A stretch of 64,000 nt of DNA from Ophelia neglecta. Lineage: Eukaryota. The stretch lies in the NCBI GenBank assembly GCA_965285935.1, contig OZ260661.1, forward strand, positions 9,734,001-9,798,000, given 5' to 3'. Below the pieces are notes generated by a model, which saw only the letters and a list, made by a program, of their open reading frames with translations, was not told the DNA's origin and searched no databases. A program made the translations under genes and the position numbers. The stretch's first letter is position 1. Each line of letters starts with the position of its first letter. Positions 8,519-62,510 of this stretch are shown here, piece after piece.

Positions 8519-8762
8519 GGCATACTGGAAAACCTGATACAAAATACGAAGGAAATACGAGATACACAGATACGAAAAATTAAGATTGAGTTGGATTATG
8601 ACAGGGTAAGGGGTAGGGTTAAGCTAGCAACCTAACTAAACCATAACTTACTTTATCCTTCACCCTAACCCTAACCTAGTCCATATGGCTACGTTTTAAA
8701 CACCTCGTATCTCGTATCTGCATCACGTATCTGGTATTTCGTATCAGCTTTTCCAGTATGCC
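8519..8762. mobile_element. Mutator-like MITE, copy 1
   Basis: TIRs GGCATACTGGAAAAcCTGATAC...GTATCAGcTTTTCCAGTATGCC; 9-bp TSD CTATTAAGA (8510-8518, 8763-8771); inserted in the LINE endonuclease region. Confidence 0.85.
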
Positions 8763-26225: not shown

Positions 26226-26520
26226 ATGAGAGCAAAGCAGCGATTCTTGAATCGCGGCTCGACTCAAAAATCAATCCTAACGGGCAGATTAAAACTGAGC
26301 CTATCGGTTATCAATCGGTAGATCAATTCTCTCTGAGTTCTCCGTATTGCGAGACTGATAAGCTACCTGATAGTGAAGAAAACCAAGGTGACCGTCAGTT
26401 TAAGTCTGAACCGGGTGAGGTCATTAAACAAGCTCTAATTGCTCCGGGTAATCGTCCCACTGACCTACAATTTTCTGTTGACGAGCGCCCAGCCCAGATT
26501 CTGATCTAGCTTTCAAGAAT

Positions 26521-31883: not shown

Positions 31884-34800
31884 TTAATCATCGTTACATT
31901 CCAATGGGCAAACGCGTGTGATTGGTCGAAAATACTCCTGATTATTCACTTGGACCTTCACGACGCGGACATGTCCATCATGCCCTGGGATTGTCTCCTT
32001 GACTCTCCCGAGAGGCCAGCTACCCCGTGGGGTTTCAGGAGTAACCATGAGAACAACTTCTCCTGGTTGAATATCACGAGCGGGAAGGAACCACTTTTTT
32101 CTTCCGCTTAATGACGGCAGCCATTCCCTCATCCAACGCGACCATACGTGACGGACTAGTTCTTGTACCCTGCGCCATCTCCGACGGGGGTCGAAGGCAT
32201 TCGAATCCACTGACGGAGTGAAGACTCCCCCCATTTGACCATGGAGAAAATGGTTTGGTGTCAGTGGTAGGATGTCCTTAGGATTGGCTGATTGATAGGT
32301 GATTGCTCTAGAATTAATCAGACCTTCGGCTCCGGTGATAGCGCTCACAAGCTCTTCATCAGTGATATCGGCCGCATTTAATATGGCATAAATGGCTTTT
32401 TTGGCTGATTTAATCATTGATTCATGAATTCCCCCAAAATGGGGCGCGAGAGGGGGGTTAAAATGCCATTTAACCATCTGATGGGCAGTTTTTTCCTGGA
32501 TTTTACTTTTGTCCAACTTCCGGTAGGGTTCGAGAAGCTCCTTTTTTCCTCCGACCAGGTTACTGTCATTGTCGCACCAGACTTCACGAGGCAGTCCCCT
32601 ACGCGATACCATCCTATAGAATGCATTTAGAAACGCGTCCGTAGTGAGAGAGTACGCCATTTCCAAATGCACAGCGCGAGTCGACATACATGTGAATAAA
32701 CACAAATATCGTTTGGTCCGGGTTTTTCCACGCCCCTGAACTGTTAGAAAAGGACCACCGAAATCAAGCGAACAATATTCGAAGGCACGAAGTGTAGGCT
32801 TGGAGCGAACAGCAGGAAGTGGAGCCATGATTTGCGATGCGGCAGGACACTTCCATCTACGACACTGTGAACACGACATCTCATACTCTCGAATTGCTTC
32901 ACGAGCAGCGACTACCCAGTAATGGGCTGATAATGATGCCAATATTTGATTGGTTCCTGACATGTGACCACCTTGATCATGGTAGTGCTTGACGATGAGT
33001 GTCGTCACCCAGCTCCGACGCGGAAGGATAACCGGAAACTTCACATCATATGACAAGAACTCCGCATACTTCAGCCTGCTATCAGATCTCAAAAGCCCGT
33101 CGTCATCTATGCGAGGGCTGAGATTACAAATACGACTACTTTTAGGAATGTCCTTCTTGCTGCTGAGGGCTTTGATTTCAACTGGAAACGCCTCCCTCTG
33201 AGATTCGACGATAATCTGAGTTTTTGCATTCTCTATTTCTTCTGGCTGCAGTTCACCACAGGATCTCTCTGATTTGGGTGTGCAACAGTTATTGATAAAT
33301 CTGTTTACCCATGCCTGCACGCGAGTCAGTCTTAACCAACTGGAGAACCGGGTTGGTTTAAGACGCCACTCACTGCTACTCGAATCAGTTTCATATGTCA
33401 CCAACATATGATTTTGCGTGTGTTTCGAATAGGCAATGTTTTGTTTTGATCTTTTTATTTCATGTTGAGAGTTTATTTTCTTTTCTACAATGTTTTCTGG
33501 CCATTCTAACATAGGTTTTTCCAAGAATGAAGGTCCATGCCACCACTCTGATTTTTCGGCAACCTGTCCGGCTGGTAAACCTCTTGTTAGAAAGTCTGCA
33601 GGGCTTTGATCGGTGGGTACATGGCGCCATTTGCCCGGGGATGTGGCGTCCTGGATCTCGCCCACCCGATTGGCAACGAATGGTTTAAATTCTCTGCTGT
33701 GACCACGGATCCACCACAACACATTCGAATTGTCAACCCAGAATACTGCAGTGTCCAACTTTAGTTCAATAACTGATGACACGACTTTTGCCAAACGGAG
33801 ACCTAATACAGCGCCCATCAATTCGACACGAGGAATACTGATCGATTTCAGCGGAGCGACTCGAGCGCGAGCAGCGACGAATCGGCAATTAACAGATCCA
33901 TCCACATAAGCAGAGCTTAGGTAAGTTATAGCGCCGTACGCGCTTTCGGACTTGTCCACAAATGTGTGCAATTGTTTGTCCGAGATCTCCTTATTTTCAC
34001 GTAAACACCTCGGCACTCTGATCTCAGTCAAATCACTTAACTCATCGCACCACTCCCTGATTTTGTCACTCAGATCACTTTTTAGGGGTTCATCCCAATC
34101 CTGGCCTGCAATCCATGCCTCTTGTACCATCATTTTTGCCCTAATTACAAATGGTGATAGGAAACCGAGGGGGTCGAATAATCTGGCAATGATACTCAAC
34201 AGGGTTCGTTTGGTTGGGTTAAAAGGAGAGGGTGGCGGACTGACATGGAAAGTGAACACATCATCAGTTGCCTACCACAAGACACCCAGTGTCTTTACAC
34301 AAGGAAACCCTTATCTAAGTCCACCTCAGATGCTCTATCTTCAGGGTTTACTGCTTGCAACACAGTAGGCGAATTTGACAGCCATTTTCTTGGATACATC
34401 CCGGCTTCACCCCACAAGGCTTTCAACTGTCTAACCAGCTCAACACCCACGCCATCATTGTCAACAGAATCCATGCTATCAATCATATATGTACTCTTTT
34501 GTACAGTTTCTGCAGCAAGTGGGTAGATATCGGCATGTAGCTCGGCATTCTTCTGAGAAACATACTGAGCTACAAATGGCGATGCATTTACACCAAACAC
34601 AACTCTCTTGAACTCCAGGATGCTTGGTTCCTGCGAAATGTCTCCATACCGCCATAAGAATCGATGGTATGGTCTGTCGGCAATCTGCAGATACATCTGG
34701 GCAATATCACACATCACAGCCACTGAGTTTCTTCTAAAACGTAAAAGTACATCAAACAAGTCTCTTTGTAATTTTGGCCCTTGATGTATCATGTCATTAA

Positions 34801-37272
34801 GTGACACACCTTCGTGAGTAGCGGAAGCATCGAACACCACTGTCACTTTTGTGGTGGATTTATCTGGCTTAATGACTGGAAAATGCGGATGATACCATCC
34901 ACCTTTGTCTTTCTCATCTAATGATACTGCTCTGATGTAGTCCTTTGTAACATATTCAGATATCACATCATTGTAGGTCTTGATAAGCTGAGGATCCTTC
35001 AACAGCCTCTTTTCAGTGTTTTCTAGCCTCTTTAAGGCTGTTTCATAATTCAATGGTAAATCAGGCCAACCATTGCGCCATGGGATACCAACTGTATATC
35101 TGGATTCTTGGCGGGATATTGATTGTTCAATTTGGGCTATTGCATGTTTTTCATCAGTGTTCAAGATATGAGGGCCATCCTCAAGTCCTGACTGTTCAAT
35201 TTCCCAAAAGTTTCTAACACTTTGTTCTAAATCGCTTGTGTAGAAGGAAAAGAAAGACTGATTTTCCCTAGGTTCGGCTACCCGACCTACACAAGTCCAC
35301 CCCAATGGTGTTAAACGAGCTATGGGGTCACCTAGCTTCCCATGTCGTTCTTCCAGCGACTGGTGTAATTCTACACAATCAATTCCAATGAGTACATCAA
35401 CAATTTTTCTAGAGCCTACACCAGGGAACTCAATGTTCCGTAGGTGAGTGTAACCATCTTTGTACTGTTTCCAGTCCACCATTTGCATGTTCCCGGTAAC
35501 CCTGTCCGTCGTCAAGGCATCAACGGTTACTTGGGTTTTTCGATCGATACTTAAAATATCTATTCTGACTTCTGTGCTAGATATTTGTTTCCTGCCATTT
35601 AGTACATTAACCGTGATATGTTTTTCGATACCATTCAGATCTTACCCGTCTACAATATCGTTGTTTACATATGTGTGACTGCTGGCGTCATCCAGCAAAG
35701 CATTTACTGTTACTTCTCGACCCTTATTTTTCAAAATAATTGGCACTGTGCGAAAAGAAAGGATTCCATCGTGGTTAGTGTAGTTCGAAGTGTGGTGGGA
35801 CCGTTCCTCTCCATTGGGCACACGATTTGAAACTGGCCCAGCAGGGTTTCTTGGGTCAGGTGTAGCCGGGGCTTGGAAGTTTCTTGCAACAGGGGTGTGT
35901 GAATTGTGTAAGAGGCGATTATGGTTTGATCTGCAGTTGTCCACTCCGCAAATCCTACTTCTCTTACAAGAATCCCCCCGGTGGTTGGATCCCAAACAGC
36001 GAAAACATAATTTTAGTTCCTTTGCTTTGTCCCACCTCTTGTCTATATTCAGCTCCTTAAATTTGTCACAGAGCCATATAGGATGCAGCCCCTGGCAAAC
36101 CTGGCATTTTCTTTCAGGTTTTTTCTCTGGTAATGTCTGTGTCACAAATGCCCCCGAGTTGCCAATTTTTCTATGACTGTCTCTTTTGTTATCCGTTTTG
36201 GAACTGTCCATCACCCCTCGTATTGTCTCTGAAGCTACTGTCTAAAATTCTGACTCTAAAATGACCCACCTCCGTAATGTCTCCACTGATTCTACTTCTT
36301 TTTTTCATGAACCCATCTATTGTATTGTGTGAGCATTGGTTGATTCATCTTTTGTTGAAGTCTCGCATACAAGGTTCCTGCTGACAGCTCCTCGTGCCTT
36401 TGTGAATCTTTTAAATTAATAACCACTATGTTCAACAGATCTGCAAACTTCTCCAAATCTTTGTGATTATTTGTTCTGATAGTCTGGAATTGTTCTATCT
36501 CCTCTAAGTAAAGTGCTATCTGCCTCCGCTTGCCCCCATATTTTCTATCCAATCTCTCTTTTGCAGCCGTGTAAGCTGCAGCTGAATGTCCTAAACTTCG
36601 TATGACCTGGAGGGCGTGTCCTGATAAGTATTGCCTGAGTTGCAACAGTTTGTATTCTGGAGTGGCTGGTGCCGCCTCCACACAAGCAATAAAGGAACTT
36701 TTCCACTGTTCATATTGCCTTTTATCTCCAGAAAATACTGGAATTGACACTCTCTTTAATTGTCGCCACAAGTCCTGGCCGATGGCAGTTTCATTGTTTC
36801 ATTGTTGAGGGGCTTCTCTTGTGGTATTTACAGGTACATTGTCAATATCGGGGTCTATAAATTGTTCATCAAAATCTAGTCTATTTACCAGCGGATCTGA
36901 CCTTTGACCTCTATCTTCATGGCGGTTACTCGAGACGCGCCTGACGGGAGTTTTCGGCACCATGCCGGTACTGGCTGATGGTCCTGATGTCGGCAAATGC
37001 TTTCTGATAATAGATCTGGTGTAGTACGAATCGAGAAGTTTTTGTTCATGTTCAATGGACTGTTCTAACCTGTTTATTTCATAGGTGATGTCGTCCTCTA
37101 TTTCCCTAAATTCCGCGTGTACAGGCTGAGATTCATCTCTAGCTCTCCGTATGTTGATTCTCAATGGATAAGACCACGTTTGATCGCCATCCTTAGCTGC
37201 GGCTGCACCAGCAGCTCTCGATACTGCGCCATATCTATTCATGTCCTTATCCATGATGAACTTGTTAACCAA
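31884..37272 (-). pseudogene. BEL/Pao gag-pol polyprotein broken into at least five ORFs
   Basis: IPVFSGD..YEQWKSSF (gag), three Cys/His knuckles, ALLDDAS (protease), VVFDAS...FGVNASPF (RT), FDPLG..APLK..SIPRVEL (Pao RNase H region), HHCC + DFGGPF..HLE..GGIHES (integrase), WPLGRV..GHDGHVRVV C-terminus. Confidence 0.95.
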
Positions 37273-38338: not shown

Positions 38339-38583
38339 GGCATACTGGAAAACCTGATACGAAATACGAAGGAAATACGAGATACACAGATACGAAAAAA
38401 ATAAGATAGAGTTGGGTTATGACAGGGTTAGGGGTAGGGTTAAGCTAGCAACCTAACTAAATCATAACTTACTTAACCCTTCACCCTAACCCTAACCTAG
38501 TCCATATGGCTACGTTTTAAACACCTCGTATCTCGTATCTGCGTCTCGTATCTGGTATTTCGTATCAGCTTTTCCAGTATGCC
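38339..38583. mobile_element. Mutator-like MITE, copy 2
   Basis: Same TIRs and body as 8519-8762; 10-bp TSD ATGACTGAAT (38329-38338, 38584-38593). Confidence 0.88.
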
Positions 38584-41160: not shown

Positions 41161-44100
41161 TTAGTTTTCAGGATGCCTCAAGGTGTGGTATCTTGCAAAG
41201 CATGGGGTCTTGCAAAGCGGCATATGGCACACACTGCACTCAGTGGTTATTCTGGTTCCCCTGTATTGGCCAGCAGCTCTGTTCCGAGAACCACATACTC
41301 CACACTGGCGTGATACCAGGTTATGATTGAGGGGTACAATTCGAGCTGGAACTGGTAAAGCAATTGGACGACCAACCCTCACCCTTTCAGCCCTATACTC
41401 CCCGATAAGACTCTGGCAGATGGCCTGATGGAATTTCAGCCTTGGCATTGGCCTCTCCCCTGCTCTGTCACAAACTTTCTGATAGACTATCTATGCATTG
41501 ACTGGAAATAAAAATAAATGAATCAATTGAATCCTGTTTTACAACTATAACAATAACTTGATATAGGGTGTTATTCTGGGGAAGGGGACACGAGCCCAGC
41601 ATAATGCCTGTGAAAATCCATTGATCACCATTATTTTGAGCTTCAAATTGAACAACATAATAAACAGGTTTATGTGGTTATAAAGATGTATGGTGTTTTT
41701 TTTTAACTGATTTAAGTCTGTTAAGAATTATACACAGACTTGATTTGTTCAGAGTTCAGAATCAGAATTAGTTAATTTTGACCAAAAACAGGAAACAATA
41801 ATAATTAATTGCAAAATATTATGAAACACAAATTGTATGCCATGACATACAAATCAAATATATCTCTGATATCAAATAAAAAATGGTCCTTACTAAGAAC
41901 TAAATTACTAAATTATTATAACATACCAGCAGCAGTGAGAAAAAGGCTGATTGTCACTTTTTTCCACATCTTGACTGACCTAAGATCTGGGTCATAGGTC
42001 AGTATCTTTTGATCAGCCAGATCCACTCCTCCCATGCAAGCATTGTAGTCAGCTACTACCGATGGAACCTCTTTGATTTCTCCTGAAGCATTTTGGTATT
42101 GAATAACCCTGTAACAAATTGTACCTCTGTAAAATAATGGTATGAAAGTCTTTTTTACACACATGAATCTTTAGCAAGTATAGTGTAAAATAATTCCTGT
42201 ATAATATTCAATTTCAACTATTATTAGATCAACAAAAAATGTGCAATTTTTTTTTCAATTAAAAGTACCTGCAATGTTCTGTTCTTGACAAGTAATTGGA
42301 AGCTCAGGGCCAGTAGTAGTTGATAAAAGTAGTTGAAATAGTAGATTAATAGTAAGTTGCCTGTCCTGAGGAGAAATGAATTACATGGGATATTTGAACT
42401 TTAATTTGTTTTAGTATACGTTTCTATTGTCACAAGTCAAGATTCTTTTGGGGAAGGTGGAAGGCAAATGTCTACTACAACATTATCAATAATGTTCTAG
42501 AAGATTATTGATAATGTTCAGCAGACGGTTGTCTAGACACTGTCTGGCTTGACCGTCTGGCACAATCTGTGACTGCATGACTGCATACCTGTGAATATGT
42601 ATAGCACAGGTCCCGATGGTGCTGTGCTACACAGTATATGGTTTTTCACCTGGTCTGACAGTTCTGCCTATTAGAAAGAGACAATCATTGCCAATAAATA
42701 GTAAGATATTATAGTCATATAATACAAATATTTATTTTTTTCTTGATATTAGCTTTTTCTTTAGTTTTATTTGGTATTGCCAGGTGCCTCAAGTTGGTTA
42801 GATCAACCGGGGGCTTCTCCTCAAATCTACTAGTACTAGCTTCTTGCTTCATAGGATCCTTCAAAACACAAAGTTACAATATCTGATTACTGTGTACTTA
42901 GTATTATTTCATAAAAAAATCGCCTAAAAACAGGACATATTTCTATCAATATTGTCCAACTGGTAAAATTGCTCAAGTTATTTACATCCTAGCCTTGAAA
43001 TATTACGATTATTCTGCCCTTGAAAGTATATTTATCATAATAATTGGCAAAATGCAAAGGGGAAAGAAGTGCTTATGTATCAAACTTACTATGGCTGTGT
43101 CACCTTTCAATTCCTTGCACATGTCAGACAGAAAATCGTCTGTAATGTTGAAGTTTGGTATATCCACATTGCACAATTCCTCCACCGGGATTTGACTTAA
43201 TTCTAATGAAGTCTCTTCGTCAAACAAATTGTTTTCTATGTTGCTACAAAATTGGCTAAACACTAAATCTGAGAGATCAGTATCCTCCATATTGCTGTCA
43301 TAAATTTCAACTGTATAGCCTATGGATATTGGGCCATGAGGCAAACCAAGTGAGGGCTAGCTAACCTAGGACATGCAGGTAAATCTATCAGGTGATTTGT
43401 GTTAATTAAATTCATGGCCAGGGCCCCGCCTGTTTGAAGCAGGACCATATCAAGCATACCTAGCCTTACTTGTGGACACAGGTTCACTGCTTAATTAATT
43501 TTGTAAATCAAATCACTAGGCCTGTATATCAGTCCATTTATTGCCAGACGAGTGTCCAGTGAATGACCAACTAGGGGCGGAGCAGATAGTGTCTGCAGCA
43601 CAGTCTAGGATTTTGGTCACATTGGCCAACTGTCTGGTTTATAATTATTCCAACAAAATCTATTTAAACGTTTATACTAAGTGAGAGCTGCGCCGTGTCG
43701 CACTTTATTACGAATAACCCTGGAGCCTCGAACACTATCTCTCACTTAAATTATTATAAAAGCGAATTCGGCATGTTAGAATTTGTCACAACCATTAAAA
43801 ACAAAGTGTGGCTACTATGAGGACAAGTGAAATGGTGAAACCAGTCTCGTACAGACAAATGCTACATTTCTTTAGTTGTAGATGCATGTCAAGTTAATTA
43901 ATTCCCAAAAAAAACAGAAGTGTGTATATTACCCTGGAGACCCATTTGTTGTCAGGAAGGTCACAACCCTCCTGTCATGGTACTTGATCGCAAGTAGAGC
44001 TTCCTGTGATCGTACAATGGTCTGTCCTCTTTCAGGCTGGTTGTGGCGAAAACTCAAGGGCATGCCCCTCCTGTTACATACAACTGTCCCTGTAAAGTGG

Positions 44101-45993
44101 GTCCCATTGTCAAACATGTGATGAGCCAAAGCAGGGTTTGTGAAAAATGAGCCAGTGTATGTCCCTTATTGTAGTGGGGCTGACACAGACTGTCCACTAC
44201 GGACATTCTATTGATGTGATATGCATATATTTAACTAATTGCTTTTTGCAGAATCTCATAGCTAGAAAATATTTGCAACAGAAGTTTGAAATAAATAGGA
44301 ACTATATTGTATCTTGTTGAACATACTTGTACTCTCGTGCAAATGACTGGTTGAAATGGTCAATGAGCGGTAGAACTTTGGCCATAGGGTCATACCCTTG
44401 GTGGTTTCTCGGTCGGGCAGCATCATTATCACTGGCCTGCAGAAAGCGAAGCAACAGCTGGAACCTATCTCTCTGCATAATTGAACTGTACGATGTTGTG
44501 TTTGTGAGCCATGAATCCTCAGATGTATTCCAGTAGCTCTCTATGCTGTGTTTTTTTTTACTAACCCCATACCAAAGAGCATACCAAAGAAGGCTCTCAT
44601 CTCCTGGCTGTCTGTATCTGTCCACTTCCGGGCCCGGGAGTTGGGTGGAAGAGTGTCAAAGGGGTGAGCAGCCAAGTACTGATGGGCATACCTAAAGAAA
44701 AAAAATATTAGCATAAAGAATTGTCACAGAATTGTGTAAAACATTTTCTTTTTATAATAGGCAATTAATATGAAGTATTCACTGACGGATCATAGAAGTG
44801 GAACTGTGAAGGAGGTTTGGGGTGCAGGTGATTGACAGATACTATACCCACCCACCCACGGCCATCACTATTCCTGAGTGAATTGATATGAATATTGTGA
44901 AAATAAGCAATCATTATATTTTACTTAATAATAAGCAGATAAAGAACATGCCCATTTTTGTGTTGACTGATTCATCACAACTTTGCCAGTAAGAAATAAT
45001 CAGCTGGTCCTATTTTATTTGATAAAATTGACCTATATTATAATATTTTTTGCTGAATGGAGACATAGTTAACAATAGCTGCCATCGGAGGACAGCGGTT
45101 CCTAAGATCAAGGCCTATTTAATTGATTCTATAGGTCTCGCCTATAGATGGATTAAATTTTATTAAATACAACTGAAATATCTACCTGTTCGTTTGTTCA
45201 GCGAGATGCTGAAAAACGTTGTTCCCCACGCTATCGTTACAAAACAAAGACATATAAGTTATGGGGATGGCGTCCACCGCTGGAGATGAAGTTGGGCCGA
45301 CTCTTCCCCCCTGGACACCACCGCTCGAGCAACCCAGTCTTCTGGCCTCACCATCAACGGCATCCAAGGCCCGTACCGTCCCCGCACCCGTTGGAGAGGG
45401 ACATCCAGCCGAGCAGGCTGCTGGTTTAAGTTCTGGTGGCTCTGAGGGCCAGGTGGCTGAGAAGGGGGTCGCAGTTCTTCGCCAGAGATGCTACCATCAC
45501 TGCTATACACGGCATCTGTCAAGTCTGACTCGCTGTCTTGGTCGGACATCTTGGCTGCTGATAGTTTGTTTGTACACAGACGACATGTGCACTTGCAATA
45601 AGCATATCTGGTCAATCTGAGTTCATGACCGCAGAATGGACCAAACGCAGGAGAGAATTATGTTACCTTAATGAAATAAAGTTGAGCGTATTTACGATGA
45701 AGGCACAAAACAGTTATGATATTCATATTTCAATTTTATCACTACACGGTATTGGAACTTTCCTAGTTAGGAATCAAAAAAACTATAGCATGCCATTACA
45801 TAATCACATGACCACAGGGAAAACAAACCGGGAAAAATGAAAGTACAAACTTTTGTAGCCAATTTTACAAGTGCGCGTTGACGTCAGAGCTAAGTTTGAT
45901 GTCATTACGTCATATATTCAAAAATAATTTCGTAATCACGTAATTATCAAATAACGGCCTGGCGACATAAATGTCGCTAGCGCAGCAACAGGG
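41161..45993 (-). mobile_element. Decayed piggyBac transposon with a spliced transposase gene; one terminus retained
   Basis: Exons ~45549-45186, 44691-44327, ~44205-43933, 42108-41927, 41501-41161. Motifs AEQTNRYA, EMRAFFG..MG, YW, MQRDRFQLLLRFL, GTV..NRRGMP, YNACMGGVDLADQ and C-terminal CxxC...CSVC..PLC..CF..YH. Terminus ...CAACAGGG-TTAA at 45993-45997. Confidence 0.88.
43091..43290 (-). pseudogene. Acidic orphan first-exon-like ORF inside a piggyBac intron
   Basis: MEDTDLSDLVFSQFCSNIENNLFDEETSLELSQIPVEEL...KGDTAI followed by a GTAAGT donor; likely the N-terminus of another nested element's gene. Confidence 0.35.
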
Positions 45994-48131: not shown

Positions 48132-48560
48132 GGCATACTGGAAAACCTGATACGAAATACGAAGGAAATACGAGATACACAGATACGAAAAAGTAACGCC
48201 AGTATATTATAATGATTGGTCCATAACGTGGTAGCGCCTTAGGCGTCCCACACTACTTATGTCGTCCTTTCCGGCGCATCCATGTCTCACTCGATTTCCG
48301 TGTTATTGGGTACATAAAAATATACTTCACTTCCGGCTATATCAATGTGAGTCTTGGTGTTGTGATTCCTACTCTAATTTGCGTAAGATAGAGTTGGGTT
48401 ATGACAGGGTTAGGGGTAGGGTTAAGCTAGCAACCTAACTAAATCATAACTTACTTAACCCTTCACCCTAACCCTAACCTAGTCCATATGGCTACGTTTT
48501 ACACACATCTCGTATCTGCGTCTCGTATCTGGTATTTCGTATCAGCTTTTCCAGTATGCC
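48132..48560. mobile_element. Mutator-like MITE, copy 3 (longer variant, no TSD)
   Basis: Same TIRs as copies 1 and 2 plus ~190 bp extra interior (~48194-48384); flanks do not match each other. Confidence 0.85.
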
Positions 48561-48755: not shown

Positions 48756-49309
48756 AATATGTTACCCTCAATAGTGATTATTCAACGAAATGAGACGTTA
48801 GAATTAAAACTCTTCTGTTAAGTGTCTTTATCCTCAGACCAGCCAACTAAATTTGCCTCCATATAGGTCTACTGTAAAATCATTAGATTTTGCTATGAGA
48901 ATTTGCACCAGAATCACTTCTAGTTGTGTGACTTTCATGTTTCATTCAACGAGTTTTCAACCCCCTTGGACCTCCCGGCCTTACCAGCAGCGATGGGTGA
49001 GCTGCCGGCTCCAGCACCCTCGGCGAATAATGAAACGTGAACCGGGAGCTGCCAGTTCCTAGTTCATTATTCGCCGAGAAAATTTTGCCAAGGGTAATAA
49101 TGTTTTCTAGGCGTTTAACCCTCGGGGGATCATTACTAGACGGTCAATTTTGCACGCCTTTTCTCGAATTATCTACCCCCCTCGGACCTCCCGGCCTTAC
49201 CCGCAGCGCTGGGTGAGCTGCCGGCTCCAGCACCCTCGGCGAATAATAAACCGTGAACCGGGAGCTGCCAGTTCTTAGTTCATTATTCGCCGAGAAAATT
49301 TTGCCAAGG

Positions 49310-49506
49310 TTAAATGTTAAATGTTTGGGTTTTAACGTCCCTTACAACACTTGAGAGGTCATATCGGGAAAGATGAGGCGAAGGTCTGATGAATCACTCC
49401 CCCGACACAAGGTTAGGTTGAAAACAGCCCTCTCAAGCTGGGTTCGAACTCAGACCTTGGAGGTCGGAGGTCCAGCACGCTACCACTGAACCACGGAGAC
49501 TCCCAT
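49310..49506 (-). mobile_element. Full-length tRNA-derived SINE inserted in the left arm
   Basis: Minus strand has an A-box TGGTTCAGTGG, B-box GTTCGAACC, 3' gatatgacc...gttg...gggacgttaaaacccaaac and an ACATTTA tail; 13-bp TSD AATTTTGCCAAGG (49297-49309, 49507-49519). Confidence 0.92.
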
Positions 49507-49937
49507 AATTTTGCCAAGGGTAATAATGTTTTCTAGGCGTTAAACCCTCGGGGGATCATTACTAGATGGTCAATTTTGCACGCCTTTTCTCGAATTATCT
49601 ACAGAATTTACCATATAAACCAGATCTTCTCAGGCATTGGTTATATTTACCTTTTTATTGTTAATTTTTGTTAATTTACACAGGTAAATTTCCTTGTGGC
49701 CAAAAAAGCTTCTTATAAACAGTAATTCTGTACAGATGATGAAACCAAAAATAGGTCAAACTATCTGGAAGAGTTAATATACTCAAATAAATCACTAGAC
49801 TAAATATAATTTGAAAGTGGCATGGAAATAGTAGCAGCATAATGTATTTTATGTGTATTATGTGTATGTGTTTGCTGTCCTGAACCGTTTCGGAGCAGCT
49901 TGAAAGCTTTTAAAAGCATATATACAGTGGGTACGGG

Positions 49938-50228
49938 TTGCTGTTGTTGTTTGGGGTGTTTATGTGACTTTCAACACTTATATGGTCAGATTGCCACGGT
50001 GCCTACTTGTGACAGTGAGCCCAATGCTCTCTTTATAGTGCTGCCTCACTGGAGTACCTGCCAGACAGACACCAGACAGGGAACCCCACCCAGTCACATT
50101 ATACTGACACATGGCCTACCAGTTCTGATACTACTTTTGAAATGCCGAGTGCCAGGCAGTGGAGATATCAGTACCCTATTGTTATGTATTGGGTTTTTGA
50201 CCCGCCTGAGATTTGAACCCCTCGACCA
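49938..50228 (-). mobile_element. Second SINE family (Meta-SINE-like), 5' truncated
   Basis: B-box-like GGTTCAAATC on the minus strand near 50210, core cccagtcacattatactgacac...aatgccgagtgccaggca, (CAA)n-like tail; A-box missing. Confidence 0.7.
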
Positions 50229-50790
50229 CGTTTTGGTGGTTGGATACGGGAAAACAAAGGTTACATATTTAAATGCATGCATAATTACTTATACGTATAA
50301 TAAAACATGACATTTGAGAATGATCCATTCATTATGAAATTTATTGCCTTTAAAATTACACCAATTTACAGACATTTAAAATATTAAAAAGCTGTCAGGG
50401 GTGGGAACCTGAAATGAGATAACATTTTAGATAATTATTATGATAAAGACGGTGAAAGAGAGGATTCAAAAATCATTTTTCCTTTGTAAAATATTAAATA
50501 AATTAGATGACAAATTGAACCTTATATTTGGTTCTCCATATCGCATAAACGAGTTTAGTCCTACACAATTATCGATATTACTATCAAGAGGTGTATACAG
50601 CTAAACCTACATGTATATGCACACGAGACTCTCCAGCACTTATCTAACTTTGCGAAATTGAAATTGAAAAGGAGAACTCAAAACTGATCAAGTGATATAT
50701 AAGTTGCCAAAGTAATGAGCTTTGTATCTTGTGTCAGATAGTGATTTAAATGTGGTGTCAAAACTCATTAATATATATCTATAATATTGC

Positions 50791-52353
50791 CTAAAAACGT
50801 ATCAGAAGTGTTGGGGCAATGCCTAAGCATATGGCTGTTGCTATGAGCAACACAAAGACTCCACAGTCCGAGGAGTTTTTCTGGCGGAGCAATGGATCCT
50901 GTAATTTAATAAAACTATTATGTATCAATTTATCTTCCATAAAAAATGTATTTAGAAATTTGTAGTTGGTAAGCAGAACAGTACCTCATTTTTTGTTAAA
51001 GCAGATGCTCGGTAGTCTGCATTAACATGCGTAGCCATCATTCTTCTGAAAAAACATATCAATACAATTTTTATCTCTTACAATTCTGCCCATCACCCAA
51101 ATTGAAACTTTCAATACAAAAGAAACCTGGCAAAAAAGTAATTATTTAACCAATAAACTCAAATGTTATTTATTTGTCTAAACAATACATTTACTTATGG
51201 AAATACTTACCTAATAGTACGAAGCAGTTGATCATCTGACTCTCCTAGGGAGTCATAGAGAGTCATAATCTCTGCATTCCCAGCCTATGAAAAATTGTGT
51301 TTACATTTAAATTTTCAATTACAGGATAACCAAAATGACGATCCATTTATACAGTAGGGACTATCATCATAGTGAGACTGCATTTAATAAGTGATCATCA
51401 TAATCAAATATTGTACAGAATTGTTCTTTAGGATGATCAAGTAGTGTCAGGATAATTATTTTGGAGTTAAATGAATTTGGATACCTGGTATGTTGTATGG
51501 ACTGGAACTGATTTTATTTTTGTTAGGGAGTCATTAATGATTATCAAATCACTTTGGTTCAGGTTCACAAGAACAAGAATAGAACTGCATAACTCTATCA
51601 CCCAGAGAAGCAATATTTTCCATAAATTATTCCTTTCACTAGCTTGGTATGTTTGTCACTTTTAATTGCAACCTGCTAAAGTATTTTTCACGGTTACCTT
51701 GTACATTCCTGAAAATGATTTATTGCTTTACATCAGTTCAGAACCAGCCAGTGAATAGATTAATTGTAGTCTGCTAAAAGAACTAGGTTTTTTTTTTTAC
51801 CACTAATACCCAGTGTCCAGGTTTGTGCACAGGAAGGATGAAACTTGGTTTTAATTTACCCTTAAGCCATCTGTCCACACCTTTGACTCCATCCTTTGCT
51901 ATCGTACCCATCAGTTGGGACGGCAAAGCATCAAATGTACTATCCTTTGCTAACATGCCGATGTAGTTATCAATGACCTTAATAATTAAGCACAGGTCTC
52001 AATACTGTTTTATGTTAGTATAGCGGTATTCATATGTTTGATGACAGTATCATGATATTTTAAGTTATTTCTGGCCCAAGTATAAAATTAAAGTGTTAAA
52101 AACACCAGGCCAAGAACCATTTTGTTACATAATAAACAAATTCTTCACAGGTAATGACAATAGGTAAGGCCACTGCCTATTTACAGAACATCTGTCAATT
52201 TAAGATTGGGTCTTACCGAATCTACCAGCCATTCAGACTCGTCTGTTAAACACCTCAAATCTGTGAAACGAAGTTCAACCCCGTGGCGCTGAACTGCTAG
52301 AAGATGGGGTCGCTCATTCCTCACCCAGTTTGACAATATTTCCTTGTAAGTTT
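50791..52353 (-). pseudogene. Spliced Ulp1/SENP-like cysteine protease (peptidase C48) gene, decayed
   Basis: Exons 52353-52217 (..DLRCLTDESEWLVDS), 51977-51860 (VIDNYIGML..GVKGVDRWLK), 51284-51211 (..IMTLYDSLG..), 51045-50985 and 50898-50791 (RQKNSSDCGVFVL). All have AG acceptors, GT donors where internal, and compatible phases where adjacent. The catalytic-His exon is not intact. Confidence 0.8.
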
Positions 52354-53335
52354 CTGCCAGTATTAAGAAGATCAATTAACATAAAGATTTATATCTAAAA
52401 GCAAAGGTCTTGTGCACTTTAGGCATGTGGATTAAGAACATGATAAGTGATTATTATTAAGGAGAGATTCTTATTCAGGCCTTACTTACATATAGACAGA
52501 TATATTTTGCTGTTTATCTGAAAGTTTTCTTCTTGTAAAAGAAGTTTAGCTTGATCTATGACTGATTAGTTCTCTAATGGAAAGGAAAGCTTCTATTTAG
52601 GGGTCAAAAAGTAATAAAAATAAAGGTTTATAATACACAATAGTCAAAAACTGTATTGGCCAACTACAAGACTCGCCATCTTTATATATTAATAGATAAT
52701 TTACTGTAGCCAAAACTTTCTGGATTATAATTTATAAGTCCTAACAACATGTGGTGCCCATCCAGGGAAAGATATTATTTAAGCAGGAGCTGAATTCCTG
52801 AAGCTCGACACTCCTGATAATATATAAGGCCTTCAAAAAATTTTATTTGACATAATAGGTAGTTCTTATGTATTCCATATTACCAATAATGTTAACTTTC
52901 TTTTAAATATTTTACTCATGTTTGATCAATGTGTGTTAACACAAAACCATTTAAATTAGCATGCAAATCAAATCATTGGCAACTTATTTGGATATTAATG
53001 CATGGTATACATTTTAAACAAATTACATAGGGGATGCATTTTGTATACATTTTAAGCTGACTTATCCTACAAGGTTGTCAACGATAAACAAGTAAACTGT
53101 AAACAGAAACTTATCCTCTCATCAATCAAAGGCAGCAATTGTTTTTTTTATGCAATGCTAAACAAAACAAGGCAATAACAACTTTCATGCAAAACTGATT
53201 ATTTAAAAACATATTTGTTTGTATCTTGAAGAGTTCTCGAAAGTCTCTATTCCTTATAAACTCACTCTTTCCTTGTGTCTGTTCATGCTTGTAATGAAGC
53301 AAGTATGCAGAATTCTATTTTAAAGCACAGAAGAA

Positions 53336-54702
53336 GAGAAGATCTGGTTTATATGGTAAATTCTGTAGATAATTCGAGAAAAGGCGTGCAAAATTGACCG
53401 TCTAGTAATTATCCCCCGAGGGTTAAACGCCTAGAAAACATTATTACCCTTGGCAAAATTTTCTCGGCGAATAATGAACTAGGAACTGGCAGCAGCTCCC
53501 AGTTCACGGTTCATTATTTGCCGAGGGTGCTGGAGCCGGCAGCTCACCCAGCGCTGCCGGTAAGGCCGGGAGGTCCGAGGGGGGTAGATAATTCGAGAAA
53601 AGGCGTGCAAAATTGACCGTCTAGTATTGATCCCCCGAGGGTTAAACGCCTAGAAAACATTATTACCCTTGGCAAAATTTTCTCGGCGAATAATGAACTA
53701 GGAACTGGCAGCTCCCGGTTCACGGTTCCCACGGTTCATTATTCGCCGAGGGTGCTGGAGCCGGCAGCTCACCCAGCGCTGCCGGTAAGGCCGGGAGGTC
53801 CGAGGGGGGTAGATAATTCGAGAAAGGGCGTGCAAAATTGACCGTCTAGTATTGATCCCCCGAGGGTTAAACGCCTAGAAAACATTATTACCCTTGGCAA
53901 AATTTTCTCGGCGAATAATGAACTAGGAACTGGCAGCTCCCGGTTCACGGTTCCCACGGTTCATTATTCGCCGAGGGTGCTGGAGCCGGCAGCTCACCCA
54001 GCGCTGCCGGTAAGGCCGGGAGGTCCGAGGGGGGTAGATAATTCGAGAAAAGGCATGCAAAATTGACCGTCTAGTAATGATCCCCCGAGGGTTAAACGCA
54101 TAGAAAACATTATTACCCTTGGCAAAATTTTCTCGGCGAATAATGAACTAGGAACTGGCAGCTCCCGGTTCATGGTTCATTTTTCGCCGAGGGTGCTGGA
54201 GCCGGCAGCGCTGGGTGAGCTGCCGGTAAGTCCGGGAGATCCGAGGGGGTTAGATAGTTGCGAGGAAAAAAGTATAAAATTGATTGTGTAGATATGATTC
54301 CCGGAAGATAAAAGTCATAGAAAACACTGTTACCCGTGGCAAAATTTTCTCGGGGAATAATGAACTAGGAACTGGCAGCTCCCGGTTCACGGTTCATTAT
54401 TCGCCGAGGGTGCTGGAGCCGGCGGCTCAGCCAGCACTGCTGGTAAGGCCGGGAGGTCCGAAGGGGGTAGAAAACTCAGTGAATAACAAGGAGGCGGTCA
54501 AAAATTCGGGAAAAAAACTTGTAAATTAACCGTGTACAAATTATCTCCGGAAGGTAAAACGCCTAGAAAATGCTATAACCTGTAACAAAAATTTCATCGC
54601 GAATAATAAACTAGGAACTGGAATAATGGTCCAACTTTACACCCAGTTCCTTATTCAGCTAAAATCTGAATAATGAACCGGGAGCCAACTTTACGTTGCT
54701 CC
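53336..54702. repeat. Right arm: ~5 tandem 219-225-bp units plus a degenerate outer unit
   Basis: gtagataattcgagaa recurs at about 53365, 53584, 53809 and 54034, degenerating outward. Each unit holds the IR ctcggcgaataatgaac / gttcattattcgccgag. Confidence 0.95.
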
Positions 54703-56535
54703 AAAATAGTAGGTATTTTTATGGTCGCGAAAAATATAACTTAAATCAAATAAGCCTTATATAAATTTTATAGGTCGCAGTGATAGATGATTTTCCTGTA
54801 CCGTAATTATAGGCCCATAATGGTAGGCCCTATATGGAGAATGCTTTGAGTTCCGCGAACAACCACAGTGCACTGAGAGAATCAAGACCAAAAATAGGCC
54901 CAATTTCACGTTATCACATGTATATATAAAACCGTTCCTTGAACGATTGCAAACAAACTTCGACAATGAATGGTTCAATCTTTCGGCTTGATTTGTAAAT
55001 TTTCAAGTTGAATATAGACTATAACATCATAATGAACTTTTGTCCCGTATAGGTTCGCGTCCAAGGGTTCTAGGATGTGCGAACTTACCCGACTATAGCT
55101 TAGCACAAACCTCGATGCCCTGCAGGCCGCTTTCAACCCCCAAATAGACCACCCTCCACCGCACATGTCGCCATGTGTATTGCAAATTACATGAAAACAC
55201 ACTTAAAGATTTTTGACAAAAACTTATCAGCGTTCAAATAACAATGTTAGTCAAACTTTGAGAATGCTTTACTTACCGGAGGGTTCCTTTTATCTGACAT
55301 GTTCGATCCCTAAAAAGAGAATGTGTAATAGGCGCGGCTGTATGGGTCAGCGAGTAGGCCCATTGGTCAACTTATTGCCTTTCAGGAATGTCATTATTAA
55401 CATGTCTAATGGGGGCGGGGGGGGGGGGGAGTAAATTTTGAACCTATTTCGCGGAATCTCTCTTGCCTCCCTATTATCGCATTCTATCCCCCCCCCCCAT
55501 TTTCCTCCATTAAACATTGTGATTCGGCCCATAGAGGGGGGCAAAATTATCCGCCCTCCGAAATTTACCCCTTCCCCCGAATGGTATTTATGGACACTCC
55601 CTTTAGTGACCAGTTACTACTAGATCTAGCATCTCTTATTTTCAGCGTACAATTACTGAAAGCCTTAATGATTTAATCAAATTGAGAGACTTTTACAAAA
55701 TCGATCTAAATATACATGTTTTTACCAATCAGTCAGTCACAGGGGGGTTATAAAGTGCAATAACGGAGGTAATACTAAGGATAAGATATTCGTCTTTATG
55801 TTCGTGTCACATACAATAATGGAGACCTTAATTGTTTTATTAAAATAGTTATGCTGTAAAAGATGCTACCAAAATTTAGTCGTCAGTTGTTTATTAAATA
55901 TACATATTGAATAGCAACTTCTTAATTACAGTAAGACCAACGTGATTGTAATGTATTCTCAGATGGTCTGTACATCCATGTACTTTCAAGCAGTCAACTG
56001 TGCCAACACAGTCATATAGAACCAGGAATTTCCCTGAAGATATAAAAAGAGGAAGTCTAGGTAGGGGAAACTCTGCATTTATTTTGCTTTATTTTTATTT
56101 TGATTTATAAGAGACATGTTCCTAGCGTTTGTCAGAAGTCAGAGTTGTCAGAAAGTGTGTCATTACTAGTTTGCCTATTGGTTACTATCGCAGTATTTAG
56201 GTCAATTGATGTGTCTTTAGATTGGTTATTAACTATAGGCCTATAGTCATATCTCTTTTATTCTTTGCTTAATCTAAGGGATGATCTCAAATTATCCATG
56301 TTTTTCAAAAGACTAACAGTCAATTCGCTTCACGGTGGTGGTGGTGGCGGTGGTCGGGGTGGGGTGGTAAAGGCCCAAAATCTATTTTGTATGTGTTAGT
56401 TTCTCTACTTAAATTACTGATCACCGTTCATATATCACTTTGCCTTTCGTCTGTATATCTTATATACCTATCACAAAACGTAAACGCCTCTCTAGGCTGT
56501 CGCCATAGTATGGGCGCTCCTAGAGGTTCAATTAA

Positions 56536-59330
56536 AGAGTAGAGTTTATTCAACAATAGCCATGACAGGCTGTGAGTTGTACAACAACGATCTATAAATT
56601 GCACATGTGCGTTTGAACGGACAAAACCTTAAATAATAAACAATAGGGATGTATGAAAAGAGAATACAAATACAAATCCTTCTATTTATCTATGCATGTA
56701 GCTGCTTCTGATTAACATGGCTTTTCTAATATATATTGTTAAATTATTAAGTATTTTCACAGTTTCTGTTTTCATAAGGGCAATAAATTTAAACATGCTA
56801 GGCCTAACTATGTAATATCTCTGTATATCTTTTGCTCTTAATTCAAAGTATAGACAGCATTCTATGATAAAGTGGTATTCGTCTTCCAATACATTACAGA
56901 CGGGACACAATCTTTCTACAAATGGAATTTGCGGTTTATACCAAGCACCAGTTTCCACCTTAAGTTCATGGTTTCTTGTTCTAAACCTAGCCAAAATATA
57001 TATTTTATCAACAGATAGTTTGGAAATATAATAAGGTACATTGGTTATGTCCGCTATATTTACATATAAGTTGCCTTTGCTTGACACATCAAAATTAGCT
57101 CTCCAGGTCTGGATATAGCAGTCACAAATTCTTTGCTTGAAGATGCAAAGAAATGCATTAGCATTTCCCACCCCCTGATTGACCCAAACTTCCCCAAACC
57201 CATATCTAAGCAATAAGTTTTGTAACTCTGAGACCTATGTATTTCCACGTGTATGATCCCGTAGTAATGCATAACTTTTAATACACAATGTACCTTTTTC
57301 TTTCATAACAATAGCCAACAAAAATTTGACAATGCGAACATACCTATACAATATCAGTGGTTTTCGACCTGATTCGCCATACACAAATTCACTTTTGGTT
57401 GAACTTTTTAAATGCAATATTTTTTTACAGAATGCAAGGTGGACACGTTCAACATCAGTCGCTGGATGGAATCCCCATGCTTCACATGAGTAATTCAAAA
57501 TAGGGGATATTAATTTGTCAAAAAGACTGCACAAATGGTCTGGTTTTAAATTTACAAATTTGTAAGTATATTTATACAAGGCAAATACCGCTTTCTTTGA
57601 CTGCCCAGCAAGAGTTTCCTGTGCTAAATTCTATGAGCCAGATGAAGAATACACAATACCCAAATAGCTAAAATTCTCTACTATATTTATCACCTCCCCC
57701 TTATATGTCCATTGCTCACCCCTTGGAAGTCTCCCTCCCCTACGAAAAACAACTATTTTTGTCTTCTCAACATTAAGTACCAACTTCCAAGTATTACAGT
57801 AATTTTCAAGTACATTTAAACCATTTTGTAATTTTACAGCAGAGTCTGCAAGAATGACTGCATCGTCGGCAAACAACAATACAAATAGGTTCAACATGTG
57901 TGCAAAAATTCCTGTATTGCCGGAATTTGCTAATTCGCTTTCGATATCGTTTAAATACATGGCAAATAAAAATGGGCTAAGGCTTTCGCCTTGCCTGACA
58001 CAAAGTACACAATCAAAATTATCAGAGTAATTACCATACATGTCTCTCACACGCGATTTAATACTGGCGTACATACTTCTAATGATACCAAGTATGTGCC
58101 CCTTAACACCCAAATTAATTAATTTAAACCATAATCCATCTCTGTTAATATAATCAAACGCCTTCCGGAAGTCAATAAAGGCGCTATATAATTTGTGTTT
58201 TAATATGATCAATTACAGATTTTAACAAAAAAATATCGACTGTGCTAAACCCCTCCCTAAACCCCGCCTGACTTTCAATGTATATTGAATGCATATTAGC
58301 CCATTCATTCAATCTTGAATTTAACACCCAAGTGAAGAGCTTACCAAAAACACTTAGCAAAGTGATACCCCTATAATTGGAAACGTCATTTGGGTTACCC
58401 TTTTTATGCAGAGGGATAATAATACCTTCAGTCCACTGAGACGGAAAATATTCACTTTCAAATACAATATTAAATAGTCTGACGAGATGTGGTACAAGAA
58501 TGTCATTACCATGTTTAAACAATTCATTAATCATTAAATCTGGACCACATGCTTTTCTAGATTTTACATCATTTATTGCTTTTAAGATCTCATTTCAGTA
58601 ATAGGGCCATTTAATTCCTCGATTGCATTATCAATTTCACTGCTATTAAATTCACGAACAAAAGTTTTAATATTATCGGAAATATCAAAGTCTTCTAGGT
58701 TACTAGGATTATTAACTTCCTTAAAGAAATTGTAAAATGAGTCAATAGATATGTTAGGGTGTAATGTCTGGGAAGTAGCACGTAATAAACGCCAATACTT
58801 CTTGACATTATGCTTTCTTGCATGTAACAAATCTGATGTCTGGGAATTATTATAATTATTAAGGCATTTACGTGAATGGTTATGAAAAGCTCGCCTTGCA
58901 TTTATCATATCAGCTCTAGCTGAGTCGGACTTTGACAATCTATACAAATTAAGTTCCCTGAAAAATATGTTACGTTTTTCAATACATAAGGGACACATCC
59001 ACTTTTCAATGGGTTTTGTACGTTCTATACGAATAGATGAAAAATCTTTTCCAAATAAAGGTTCAGCACAACCCATACTTGCAGCTGAAAATGACTGGAC
59101 AACACCATCAACAGCAGTCTGGTCTAAAACAGAATTTACCATGAGTGTTTGTTCAAATATTCCATGGTAATTAGCATCCTGTAATAAAGAAATTTAGTTT
59201 TCGGACAAAGCCCCATCCCATACCAAGTTATGTAATTTATCATTACAGGCATACTGAAATTCTGGATATGTACCAGTCAAATCAAAATGAAGCGTGGTAT
59301 GATCAGACAAAAAGTGTACAGTGCCATTTG
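56536..59330 (-). mobile_element. Decayed 5'-truncated RTE-X-like LINE (same clade as 4874-7220, different family)
   Basis: ORF fragments with NYRGITLLS..GKLFT, QAGFR, FIDFRKAFD, VRQGESLSPFLF, LFADD, FSYLG, VYGESGR.PL, RFRTRNH.L.VETG, CPVC..LEDEYHF; AATAAA and short tail near 56536-56550. Confidence 0.9.
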
Positions 59331-60310: not shown

Positions 60311-62510
60311 TCATTCACAACCAAGTGTACATGAAAAAATAAATGGAAAAAGTGAAGTTAGAAAAAAAAAACAAAGGAAAACATGCATAACACATTGACT
60401 AACATTAAGCGAGTTTGGTTGGTCCGTCCAATCGGAGGCGGAAGCAGGCAATGAAAAACACAGAGAACATTGCTTATGGTCAGTAAATTCAACCGGACTC
60501 CTTAATAAAAAGTTGCACACATTTAAACACAAGAGAACTTTTTAATATTTTCCTTTCATCACCGAACAATAAGGTATTTAGAGTAATGATCGTCACATCA
60601 TAGCGACGAAGATATTCTATTAGCTTTCGACGCTGAACGGAATATGCAGGACGTTCAAGAAAAAAATGTAACACAGTTTCAGATTCGCCACAATAACAAT
60701 CAGGACTAGATACAAGATGATTTTGGTACAAGTCAAAATTTAAATTACTGCAGCCATTTCTTAGTCTTGCGTGAATAACAGAAAATATCCTTGAACCACA
60801 GTAATAGTACTCCGGCACAGGGGTTGGGTTGCTTTGGATACACCGACGGAAAGTTGAGAGACACTGTGTCCACTTAATATTGTCTGAAAGATCATTCCAC
60901 AGTTGAATTGATGATGGAAAGAATGAGTTTTTAAACAGGTCTAATCGACAGAATGGGTGTACGAAATTCGAAATATTTCTTAAATTATAATTTGAAGTTT
61001 CCCCAACAAGAGGTGGTAGAAACTCCCTTAGGAAATCGGGAGCGAGCCCGTGGACAATTTTGAAGAAAGTTACCAATTTATGCTCCTTTCTACGTTTAGA
61101 AAGTGATATCCAACCCACCTCTCTATAAAGATATTCCAGTTTGACACTTCACAGTCAAAGTCACTGCAACCCCCCCAAACAACATCAGTATACTCCAAAG
61201 TTGGTCTCACAAATGAAATGTACATAGATTCTAAACACTTCCTAGAAATAGATAATTTTAATTTACGTAATATTCCCAGCATTCTAGTACTAGCTGTAAC
61301 AATAGCATCGATATGATGAAGCCATTTTCCATCACTTCTAAAACACAGACCTAAATGTTTATGATGATTTACAAAATCTAGGTGTTGTGCCTGAAAAAAC
61401 AGATTCGGAAATGTTTCAGCGAATCGATTGGTAAATAACATAACTTCAGTTTTGCTAGGATTGAATGTAAGAAGCCACTGCTTAGACCACTCTGCCAACT
61501 TATTAAGATCACTTTTTACATCAGTTTCAATTGATCTTAAATCCATTGATGCCTGAGATAAGGAACTATCGTCAGCAAAGAGTCTTGTCAGACTGTGGAG
61601 ATTGTCTGCAATATCATTAATAAATATTAAAAATAGAAGAGGGCCTAGCATGGAGCCCTGTGGAACACCCGCCCCAAGTTGCCCCAGTTCTGATGCATTA
61701 GAATTCAGAACGACCCTTTTTTTTCTATTAGTTGAGTAGCTCTCCAACCAAACAGAGAAATCTTCTCTAAAACCATAGGCGACACACTTGTGTAATAAAC
61801 CCCTGTGCCAGACCCTATCAAATGCTTTTGAAATATCACAAAATACCATACATAAATATTTACGATTGTCAATTGCTCTACATATTCGATCATAAATTTC
61901 TAAAAGCTGATACACTGTTGAATGCCCTGGCCTAAAACCAGACTGATGTTTAGAGATTAGTTTACGTTCATGAAGAAAATTGTACATGTGTCTTAATACA
62001 ATTCTTTCAAATATTTTTGCAACACAACTTAAAAGAGACACTGGTCTGTAATTTTTTGTAACATCTCTGTCACCCTTTTTAAATAGTGGTATTACATTTG
62101 CTTCCTTCCAACAGGAGGGGAAGGCATTTTTTGAAATTGACATATTATAGAGAATAGAAAGAGGGTATGATATAGTGTTCACCACACCCCTCAGTAATTT
62201 GTGACTGATTTCATCAGGACCGGAGGCTTTATTTATATGAAGAATTTTAATCACATCTTTAACATCATCTATTGTTATGTAGGGCATGAAGAATATATCT
62301 TCTGTCCTTGAGGGTATGTCAGGGAGAAGAGTTGAAGAATCATCAATTTTTGATATACCACAAAAATAGGTGTTGAGTAAATCAGCCTTATCATAATCAG
62401 TAAAACCAAAAAGTGGATTCCCAGTCGAATCATTTCTAACTAATGGTGGGATTAATGACGAAGTGGTACCCTTCATAAAAAACAGTTTTCCAAAATTATT
62501 TTTGATCATT
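60311..62510 (-). mobile_element. 5'-truncated CR1-type LINE with an internal deletion/frameshift near 61120
   Basis: ORF 61070-62509: KASGPD, NYRPVSLLS, QSGFR, DISKAFDRV, GVPQGSMLGPLLF, LFADD, HKHLG. ORF 60489-61118: SFFPSSI..WN, HARLR.GCS.LN..L, C.CG..ETV.HFF. Confidence 0.92.

Follow-up and report, generated by a model that had tools for sequence, protein, structure and literature searches.

Tetris, a foldback element of Drosophila virilis, is composed of an outer domain, ~220-bp tandem repeats, an inner domain and a middle without transposase; alleles differ in repeat number through local duplication, and defective copies prevail (PMC4079207). The majority of foldback elements have been assigned to the Mutator superfamily (PMC4079207). 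Proteases of the Ulp1 type (peptidase family C48) are carried by Mutator-like elements (MULEs), as exemplified by KAONASHI/VANDAL of Arabidopsis, by MULEs of melon, rice and grapevine, and by Mutator of hydra and lancelet (PMC13317346, PMC2836005). In Ginger1, found in hydra, Aplysia, lancelet and aphid, the Ulp1 domain resides at the C-terminus of a transposase gene with up to 4 introns (PMC2836005), and C48 is also among the domains captured by Helitron-like elements (PMC11417382). Ulp1 cargo has likewise been described in CACTA. The Cg_HINE elements of oyster, finally, are non-autonomous Helentrons carrying satellite-like arrays, and most short dispersed arrays of bivalves are found in such elements (PMC7492417). 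Here we describe a locus of Ophelia neglecta in which exons of a C48-type protease lie between two inverted tandem arrays. It was identified in a stretch of 64,000 nucleotides (assembly GCA_965285935.1, contig OZ260661.1, positions 9,734,001 to 9,798,000), referred to as the window, and all positions below are those of this window. The locus is one composite structure with foldback architecture around a 3.7-kb middle, and the C48 exons are its only recognisable coding content. It is tentatively attributed to a defective non-autonomous foldback-type element that retains protease exons, a reading to which we assign a probability of roughly 0.4. Zisupton, named in an initial annotation of this DNA as a further Ulp1 carrier, was not confirmed as such in the literature searched.

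Inverted arms and the exons between them

The arms are built from a 216–225-bp repeat unit and are unequal, with about two units on the left and five to six on the right (Table 1). The initial annotation had reported two inverted arrays of a ~220-bp unit spaced 3.7 kb apart, in good agreement with the period of 225 and the spacing of 3,704 bp obtained here. Tandem Repeats Finder placed the right array at 53365–54471 with 5.0 copies and 89% matches. A repeat search returned inverted pairs of 213–255 nt between 48954–49340 and 53336–54477 that are 85–98% complementary, with pairs of up to 255 nt at 97–98%. With a single unit as BLAST query, only the two arrays were matched in the 64-kb window, with E-values down to 1e-116. 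The left units share 92–98% identity with the first three right units, R1–R3, over about 500 bp, and 49507–49631 is 98% identical to 53336–53460. The inner junction comprises the last 29 bp of each arm; it is non-repetitive, is identical in both copies without a single mismatch, as the earlier description of an exact ~30-bp junction had implied, and is followed by complete divergence. At the opposite end, left-arm homology ceases at 48938, 26 bp into the counterpart of the degenerate sixth unit of the right arm. As the left outer end thus runs into the equivalent of the sixth unit, the arms represent collinear blocks rather than random satellite patches. The long inverted repeats with tandem subrepeats are those of a foldback-type element, and the foldback-like architecture proposed initially, i.e. 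inverted tandem arms with a shared junction, is retained.

Alignment of the right-arm units revealed graded divergence, with identities of 98–99.6% among R1–R3, 92–93% for R4 and about 85% for R5. R2 and R3 are 99.6% identical and have a 9-bp duplication in common. Each unit holds a palindrome of about 60 nt, and in single-stranded DNA form it folds markedly better than 200 out of 200 shuffled sequences (z = −3.9; stem of 17+ bp). In R4, the 19 bp enclosed by the 8-bp stem arms of a small hairpin run in the opposite direction to those of all other units (54202–54226, compared with 53536–53560), which looks like a loop flip within the palindrome and indicates that the hairpin has served as a recombination substrate. 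A satellite-borne hammerhead ribozyme was considered and rejected; Rfam gave no match at the gathering score and noise only at E ≤ 1. The 62-aa open reading frame (ORF) that spans the unit had neither a database record nor a homologue.

All coding signal in the middle region was found on the minus strand, where five short exons carry the C48 motifs in the order proposed in the initial annotation, separated by four introns. All four introns are of the GT-AG type, with the donors gtaag, gtaaa, gtaagt and gtactg and with pyrimidine-rich stretches before the acceptors. The exon phases are consistent, one codon being split 2+1 across exons 3 and 4, and the G+C content of the exons (39–47%) stands against 23–32% in the introns. 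Read in order, the motifs are WLVDS/VIDNY across intron 1, VDRWLK and GHWVLV in exon 2, YDSL in exon 3 and QKNSSDCG in exon 5. The YDSL motif of exon 3 is presumably the catalytic Asp box, judging from its position and established knowledge of C48 proteases. The catalytic order His…Asp…Gln..Cys of the family is present across exons 2, 3 and 5.

Database searches were made exon by exon, with each exon submitted separately. Two exons matched the Pfam family PF02902, both below its curated threshold of 20.7 bits: exon 2 with E = 0.097 and 12.9 bits (profile positions 55–100), and exon 5 with E = 0.0035 and 17.6 bits (profile positions 161–183). The two matches share a strand and follow the order of the profile. 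Exons 1, 3 and 4 are too short to score and gave no Pfam match; exon 1 was also without a match in the PDB. For an internal control, 77 stop-free segments of at least 30–35 aa from the middle region and from 54622–56690 were scanned against Pfam. C48 was the only family with two matching segments, and three other families were matched once each (E 0.003–0.035), so that a single C48 match would by itself be at noise level. The chance expectation for a second match to the same family, out of 24,736, is in the order of 3e-4 by our own estimate (0.1/24,736 × 76 segments). In searches of the PDB, the sole match of exon 2 was SENP2, aligned over the RW.K…HW.LV block. Exon 5 was matched best by SENP5, with identity at 11 of 13 positions surrounding the catalytic Cys (QKNSSDCG compared with QQKNDSDCG), followed by a fungal Ulp1-like protease, effectors of the XopD/NopD type and SENP8. 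The best E-values of these two exons in the PDB were 0.09–1.6. Thus, the Ulp1/SENP-like identity proposed in the initial annotation is upheld by collinear, individually weak, Pfam matches of exons 2 and 5 and by the alignments to SENP2 and SENP5. Based on sequence, we conclude that a full, albeit divergent, C48 catalytic core of ~184 residues is specified by the exons, with the predicted Gln/Cys/His/Asp set intact. The stop codon is reached with ~20 positions of the Pfam C48 model remaining.

The 5′ part of the gene is less well defined. The 5′ border of exon 1 is a splice acceptor, no ATG lies within this exon, and the 980 bp upstream of it (52354–53335) have a G+C content of 30% and no coding-like frame. 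At the stricter threshold, no in-phase ATG exon with a good donor was found on the minus strand up to 54750; a lax threshold returned one weak candidate (Table 1). In line with the initial annotation, no transposase was detected: none of the 77 segments matched a transposase family, including MULE, MuDR and rve/integrase, at E ≤ 0.1, and the 2 kb beyond the right arm gave no Pfam match. No further copy of the middle region is present in the window.

Relatives of the predicted protease were sought with exon 2 as query. Among 1.84 billion cluster representatives, no C48 protein was matched at E ≤ 0.001; the five matches at this level were all repetitive non-C48 proteins, the weakest listed with 40.7 bits. 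At the level of sequence similarity, this result shows that no close relative of the putative protease is annotated in this library, and it rules out a conserved host SENP orthologue. A search for homologous proteins in the length range of 32–103 aa returned nothing, and no exon-related loci were found in viral contigs. The only two metagenome loci matched by exon 2 (L001 1367–1483 and L002) were rejected, as they are bacterial asparagine-synthase genes that share the chance word NRWLKGKLKP; these matches show that queries with short exons yield word-level false positives.

Readings of the locus

In the favoured reading, the locus would be a defective non-autonomous copy from a family of cut-and-paste DNA transposons whose long arms consist of subrepeats. 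The arms may formerly have acted as transposase-binding terminal repeats, the tandem units having raised the number of binding sites, as has been suggested for Galileo and Tetris, and the transposase would be, or have been, supplied by an autonomous relative elsewhere. The protease exons could be the remainder of a longer gene after internal deletion, this gene being either an accessory gene or a transposase whose C-terminal domain is Ulp1. The latter would account for the start-less, domain-only exon set, because in Ginger1 the Ulp1 part is the C-terminus of an intron-containing transposase. The initial annotation had stated that the element "kept" a deSUMOylase, and this is an over-reading, as exon 1 lacks an ATG and the single candidate first exon is weak; the data are equally well described by leftover C-terminal exons of a deleted transposase gene, in analogy to Ginger1. 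Later decay comprises the entry of a short interspersed element (SINE) into the left arm, loss of the outer part of this arm, and divergence of the unit number between the arms via local duplications, of which the 9-bp duplication of R2 and R3 is a trace, as in Tetris alleles. Having one truncated terminus and lacking a target-site duplication, the copy has probably lost its mobility. In favour of this reading speak, besides the collinear arms, the restriction of the unit to this locus within the 64 kb, its marked folding, the Tetris-like layout, the known Ulp1 cargo of Mutator, Ginger1 and Helitron-like elements, and the density of other transposons in the window.

Several observations weigh against this attribution. 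The initial annotation had treated the arms as the long terminal inverted repeats of one element, which was not substantiated: the outer flanks (48880–48975 and 54440–54780) share no k-mer of at least 7 bp, only a 6-mer that lies off the ends, and no target-site duplication was found around either arm alone. A shared outer terminal domain is likewise missing, since the right arm extends 200+ bp past the point where the left arm stops, to about 54700. The left end appears truncated, so that loss of a target-site duplication is possible. No transposase relative is identified and, hence, no superfamily can be assigned. Second copies of the unit, the unit ORF or the exons were not found in the collections searched, and metagenome, prokaryote-genome and viral contigs did not contain the exact unit core. 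Such blanks carry little weight, as the collections evidently lack the source genome: the ORF of a BEL/Pao retrotransposon in the window reached a best identity of only 70%, to a contig of the Tara Oceans metagenome, and exact look-ups of five ORFs of the window returned no record. Moreover, it should be noted that, in a young copy, an intact frame over ~184 codons would not argue strongly for selection. With arms that differ by only 2–3%, the intact codons are compatible with neutral survival.

The missing target-site duplications and the unequal arrays of two and five to six units would also be expected if two copies of one array-bearing non-autonomous element, a Helentron-derived HINE or an element of the "pearl" type, had inserted in opposite orientation and bracketed an unrelated C48 fragment, the 29-bp junction then being one terminus of the element. 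HINEs of oyster carry short arrays, occur in either orientation and make no target-site duplication, and an oyster gene with two HINE copies 4.5 kb apart and 99.7% identical has been described (PMC7492417); the transposon proteins of the window, furthermore, are closest to molluscan ones. We regard this reading as rather unlikely, because the hallmarks of HINEs were sought at the arm ends and not found, namely 10–12-bp subterminal inverted repeats, a 3′ palindrome and an adjoining microsatellite. Inverted 10-mers between the arm ends (≤ 1 mismatch) were limited to unit-internal ones, and the junction is not flanked by the TT (or A/T) target expected of Helentrons/Helitrons. The unit is also absent from the other 58 kb of this transposon-rich window, which is at odds with a very abundant family.

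The abrupt inner end of homology is what would be expected of a duplication breakpoint and suggests a reading that does without any transposon. A local rearrangement, e.g. break repair or template switching, could have placed an inverted duplicate of an array and its 29-bp flank 3.7 kb away, enclosing an Ulp1-like gene or gene fragment that is lineage-specific or in decay. The unequal arms, the lack of a target-site duplication and the single locus in the data searched are consistent with such an event. Yet, a rearrangement of this kind leaves unexplained that the gene in the middle belongs to a type recurring in transposons and that it lacks close host SENP relatives, and the collinearity at the left outer end requires a duplicated block with several units of graded divergence, which is possible but not predicted. 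This explanation is likewise considered doubtful.

A functional stand-alone host gene of ~200 residues, either a domesticated transposon protease or a fast-evolving SENP paralogue, would start at the in-phase ATG mini-exon 52705–52750, with the arrays being incidental, regulatory or hairpin-RNA-forming. While its catalytic residues and splice sites are all intact, the donor of this mini-exon is mediocre and its coding support nil, the domain ends ~20 profile positions before the Pfam model does, and no orthologue or paralogue was detectable with one exon; we deem a host gene improbable. The most far-reaching proposal, an undescribed lineage-restricted foldback family with 225-bp hairpin-satellite arms and a borrowed transposase, whose sole cargo is an expressed, catalytically active, intron-containing Ulp1-like deSUMOylase, kept for blunting SUMO-dependent transposon silencing in trans, is very improbable; none of the observations favours retention of the protease as a counter to such silencing.

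If the defective foldback-type element belongs to a mobile family, it would show an element of an animal that has no transposase and retains the SUMO-protease domain alone, with Ulp1 cargo tied to foldback arms able to seed satellite DNA; its known parallels are KAONASHI in plants and the Ulp1 and OTU domains of Ginger1, Mutator and Helitron-like elements. Such a family would make it possible to study whether deSUMOylases carried by transposons target transposition itself or silencing by the host, a question left open by the papers cited here. At present, the value of this single decayed locus among transposon remains is that of a lead for a genome-wide search.

Insertions and surrounding sequence

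The SINE in the left arm is flanked by a 13-bp direct target duplication (49297–49309 and 49507–49519), after which the register of the unit resumes; the insertion is later than the formation of the arm. The low-coordinate end of the SINE holds its 3′ tail, a short tandem octamer, and the tRNA-like head was not called by ARAGORN or Rfam. A 35-bp match to the tail region is found at 18277–18310. Downstream of the protease stop, the middle region holds a second SINE-like stretch (~49940–50250) with no other copy in the window, on which a chance ORF of 136 aa (49900–50310, plus strand) is located that has no Pfam match. A miniature inverted-repeat transposable element (MITE)-like sequence at 48132–48560 is located shortly before the left arm and has 29-bp terminal inverted repeats that are 97% complementary. 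Shorter copies of it at 8519–8768 and 38339–38583 are 92–100% identical over the shared parts and lack the central ~190 bp.

The window contains no N runs, has a G+C content of 32–54% in 2-kb steps and is crowded with transposon remains. Reverse transcriptase (RT) regions of the non-long terminal repeat (non-LTR, LINE-type) kind extend over 4978–7551, 56686–59142 and 60489–62509, all on the minus strand; the second of these shares its strand with the protease exons and ends ~2 kb away from the right arm, but no link between the two was found. The BEL/Pao ORF is 50–56% identical to proteins of Haliotis, Dreissena, Mya, Mytilus, Mercenaria and the nemertean Lineus, a pattern that points to a mollusc or another lophotrochozoan as the probable source. 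The highest G+C content of the window (54%), together with a strong positive GC skew, was observed in the 28–30 kb stretch, where the ORFs at 28285–29481 gave no Pfam match. The piggyBac-type fragments are followed by a G+C-rich stretch at 45259–45620 with overlapping ORFs on both strands.

Table 1. Positions of the arms, exons, insertions and neighbouring elements in the 64,000-nucleotide window
Feature	Position	Strand	Characteristics
Left arm	48938–49631		Units inverted relative to right arm; from repeat search, BLAST and unit alignment
Left arm, remnant of degenerate outer unit	48938–48964		26 bp
Left arm, full unit	48965–49180		
Left arm, second unit	49181–49309 and 49507–49602		Split by SINE
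SINE, tRNA-derived	49310–49506	−	197 bp, inside left arm; tRNA-like head, A/B-box-like motifs, read from sequence
Left arm, inner junction	49603–49631		29 bp
Middle region	49632–53335		3,704 bp; C48 exons, AT-rich non-coding DNA, second SINE-like stretch
Exon 5	50791–50898	−	QKNSSDCGVFVL (oxyanion Gln, catalytic Cys), 20 more residues, TAG stop at 50791–50793
Exon 4	50985–51045	−	61-nt linker between Asp box and Gln/Cys box; frame kept at both junctions
Exon 3	51211–51284	−	YDSL; ends with 2-nt split codon, gtaagt donor
Exon 2	51801–51977	−	VIDNY..VDRWLK..GHWVLV; catalytic His box
Exon 1	52217–52353	−	AG acceptor, 2-nt split codon, no ATG; ends WLVDS, gtaag donor; N-terminal start of C48 domain
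Candidate ATG first exon	52705–52750	−	15 codons + 1 nt, GTAAAT donor, donor score 4/7; weak; the only one at lax threshold
Right arm	53336–54488		Collinear with left arm; junction 53336–53364, then R1–R5
Degenerate sixth unit	54489–54702		62–68% identity to other units; left counterpart comprises the first 26 bp only
RT ORFs	4978–6621, 57631–58534, 61070–62509	−	
LTR element	25230–29481	+	gag-type aspartic protease and RT fragment (protease/RT 26521–28318)
BEL/Pao LTR retrotransposon	31884–37272	−	791-aa ORF (Peptidase_A17, integrase zinc domain, DUF5641) and DUF1759 gag-like ORF
piggyBac-type transposase fragments	43929–44625, possibly to ~45600	−	DDE_Tnp_1_7, E 4e-12 and 5e-6, in separate frames

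Comparison with described systems

Compared to the host proteases SENP1/2/3/5 and SENP8, the exons show the same order of catalytic boxes, with exon 5 aligning to SENP5 and exon 2 to SENP2. Conversely, they are far too divergent for an orthologue and represent the catalytic domain only, without an N-terminal targeting region.

With the Ulp1-carrying MULEs the locus shares a C48 domain in the context of a putative DNA transposon, and some MULE copies also lack a transposase. MULEs are characterised by a 9–10-bp target-site duplication and a MURA-type transposase, neither of which was found at this locus. KAONASHI elements, compared here by description, are MULEs without terminal inverted repeats that carry further genes, unlike the locus described here. 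Ginger1, which occurs in a mollusc, offers a parallel in that, after an internal deletion, a start-less set of C48 exons would remain with inverted ends on both sides. At its limits, the arm homology reads TGTT…AACA, similar to the TGT…ACA termini of Ginger1; the 4-bp flanks differ (TTCA and AGGA), and the right array continues beyond this limit. In contrast to this locus, the inverted repeats of Ginger1 are 44–270 bp long, have no tandem units and come with a 4-bp duplication, and a Gypsy-integrase-like transposase segment (rve/integrase), as in Ginger1, was not found among the 77 segments. The Cg_HINE elements are similar in their short arrays of few monomers, in the lack of target-site duplications and in copy pairs that lie a few kb apart.

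The overall plan is closest to that of Tetris and other foldback elements (FB, Galileo), in which arms of variable ~220-bp repeats and a short inner domain enclose a transposase-less middle. Tetris differs in the outer flanking domain at both ends and in its 8–10-bp target-site duplications, both of which were tested for and not found here. Its middle has no coding capacity, as opposed to the C48 exons of the present locus, and it belongs to another host phylum and shows no sequence relationship. The suggestion of the initial annotation that the family may be undescribed therefore stands at the level of the sequence family only, as Ulp1 cargo and foldback elements with satellite-like arms have each been published already; it is this family, and the combination of Ulp1 cargo with foldback satellite arms, that appear undescribed as far as searched.

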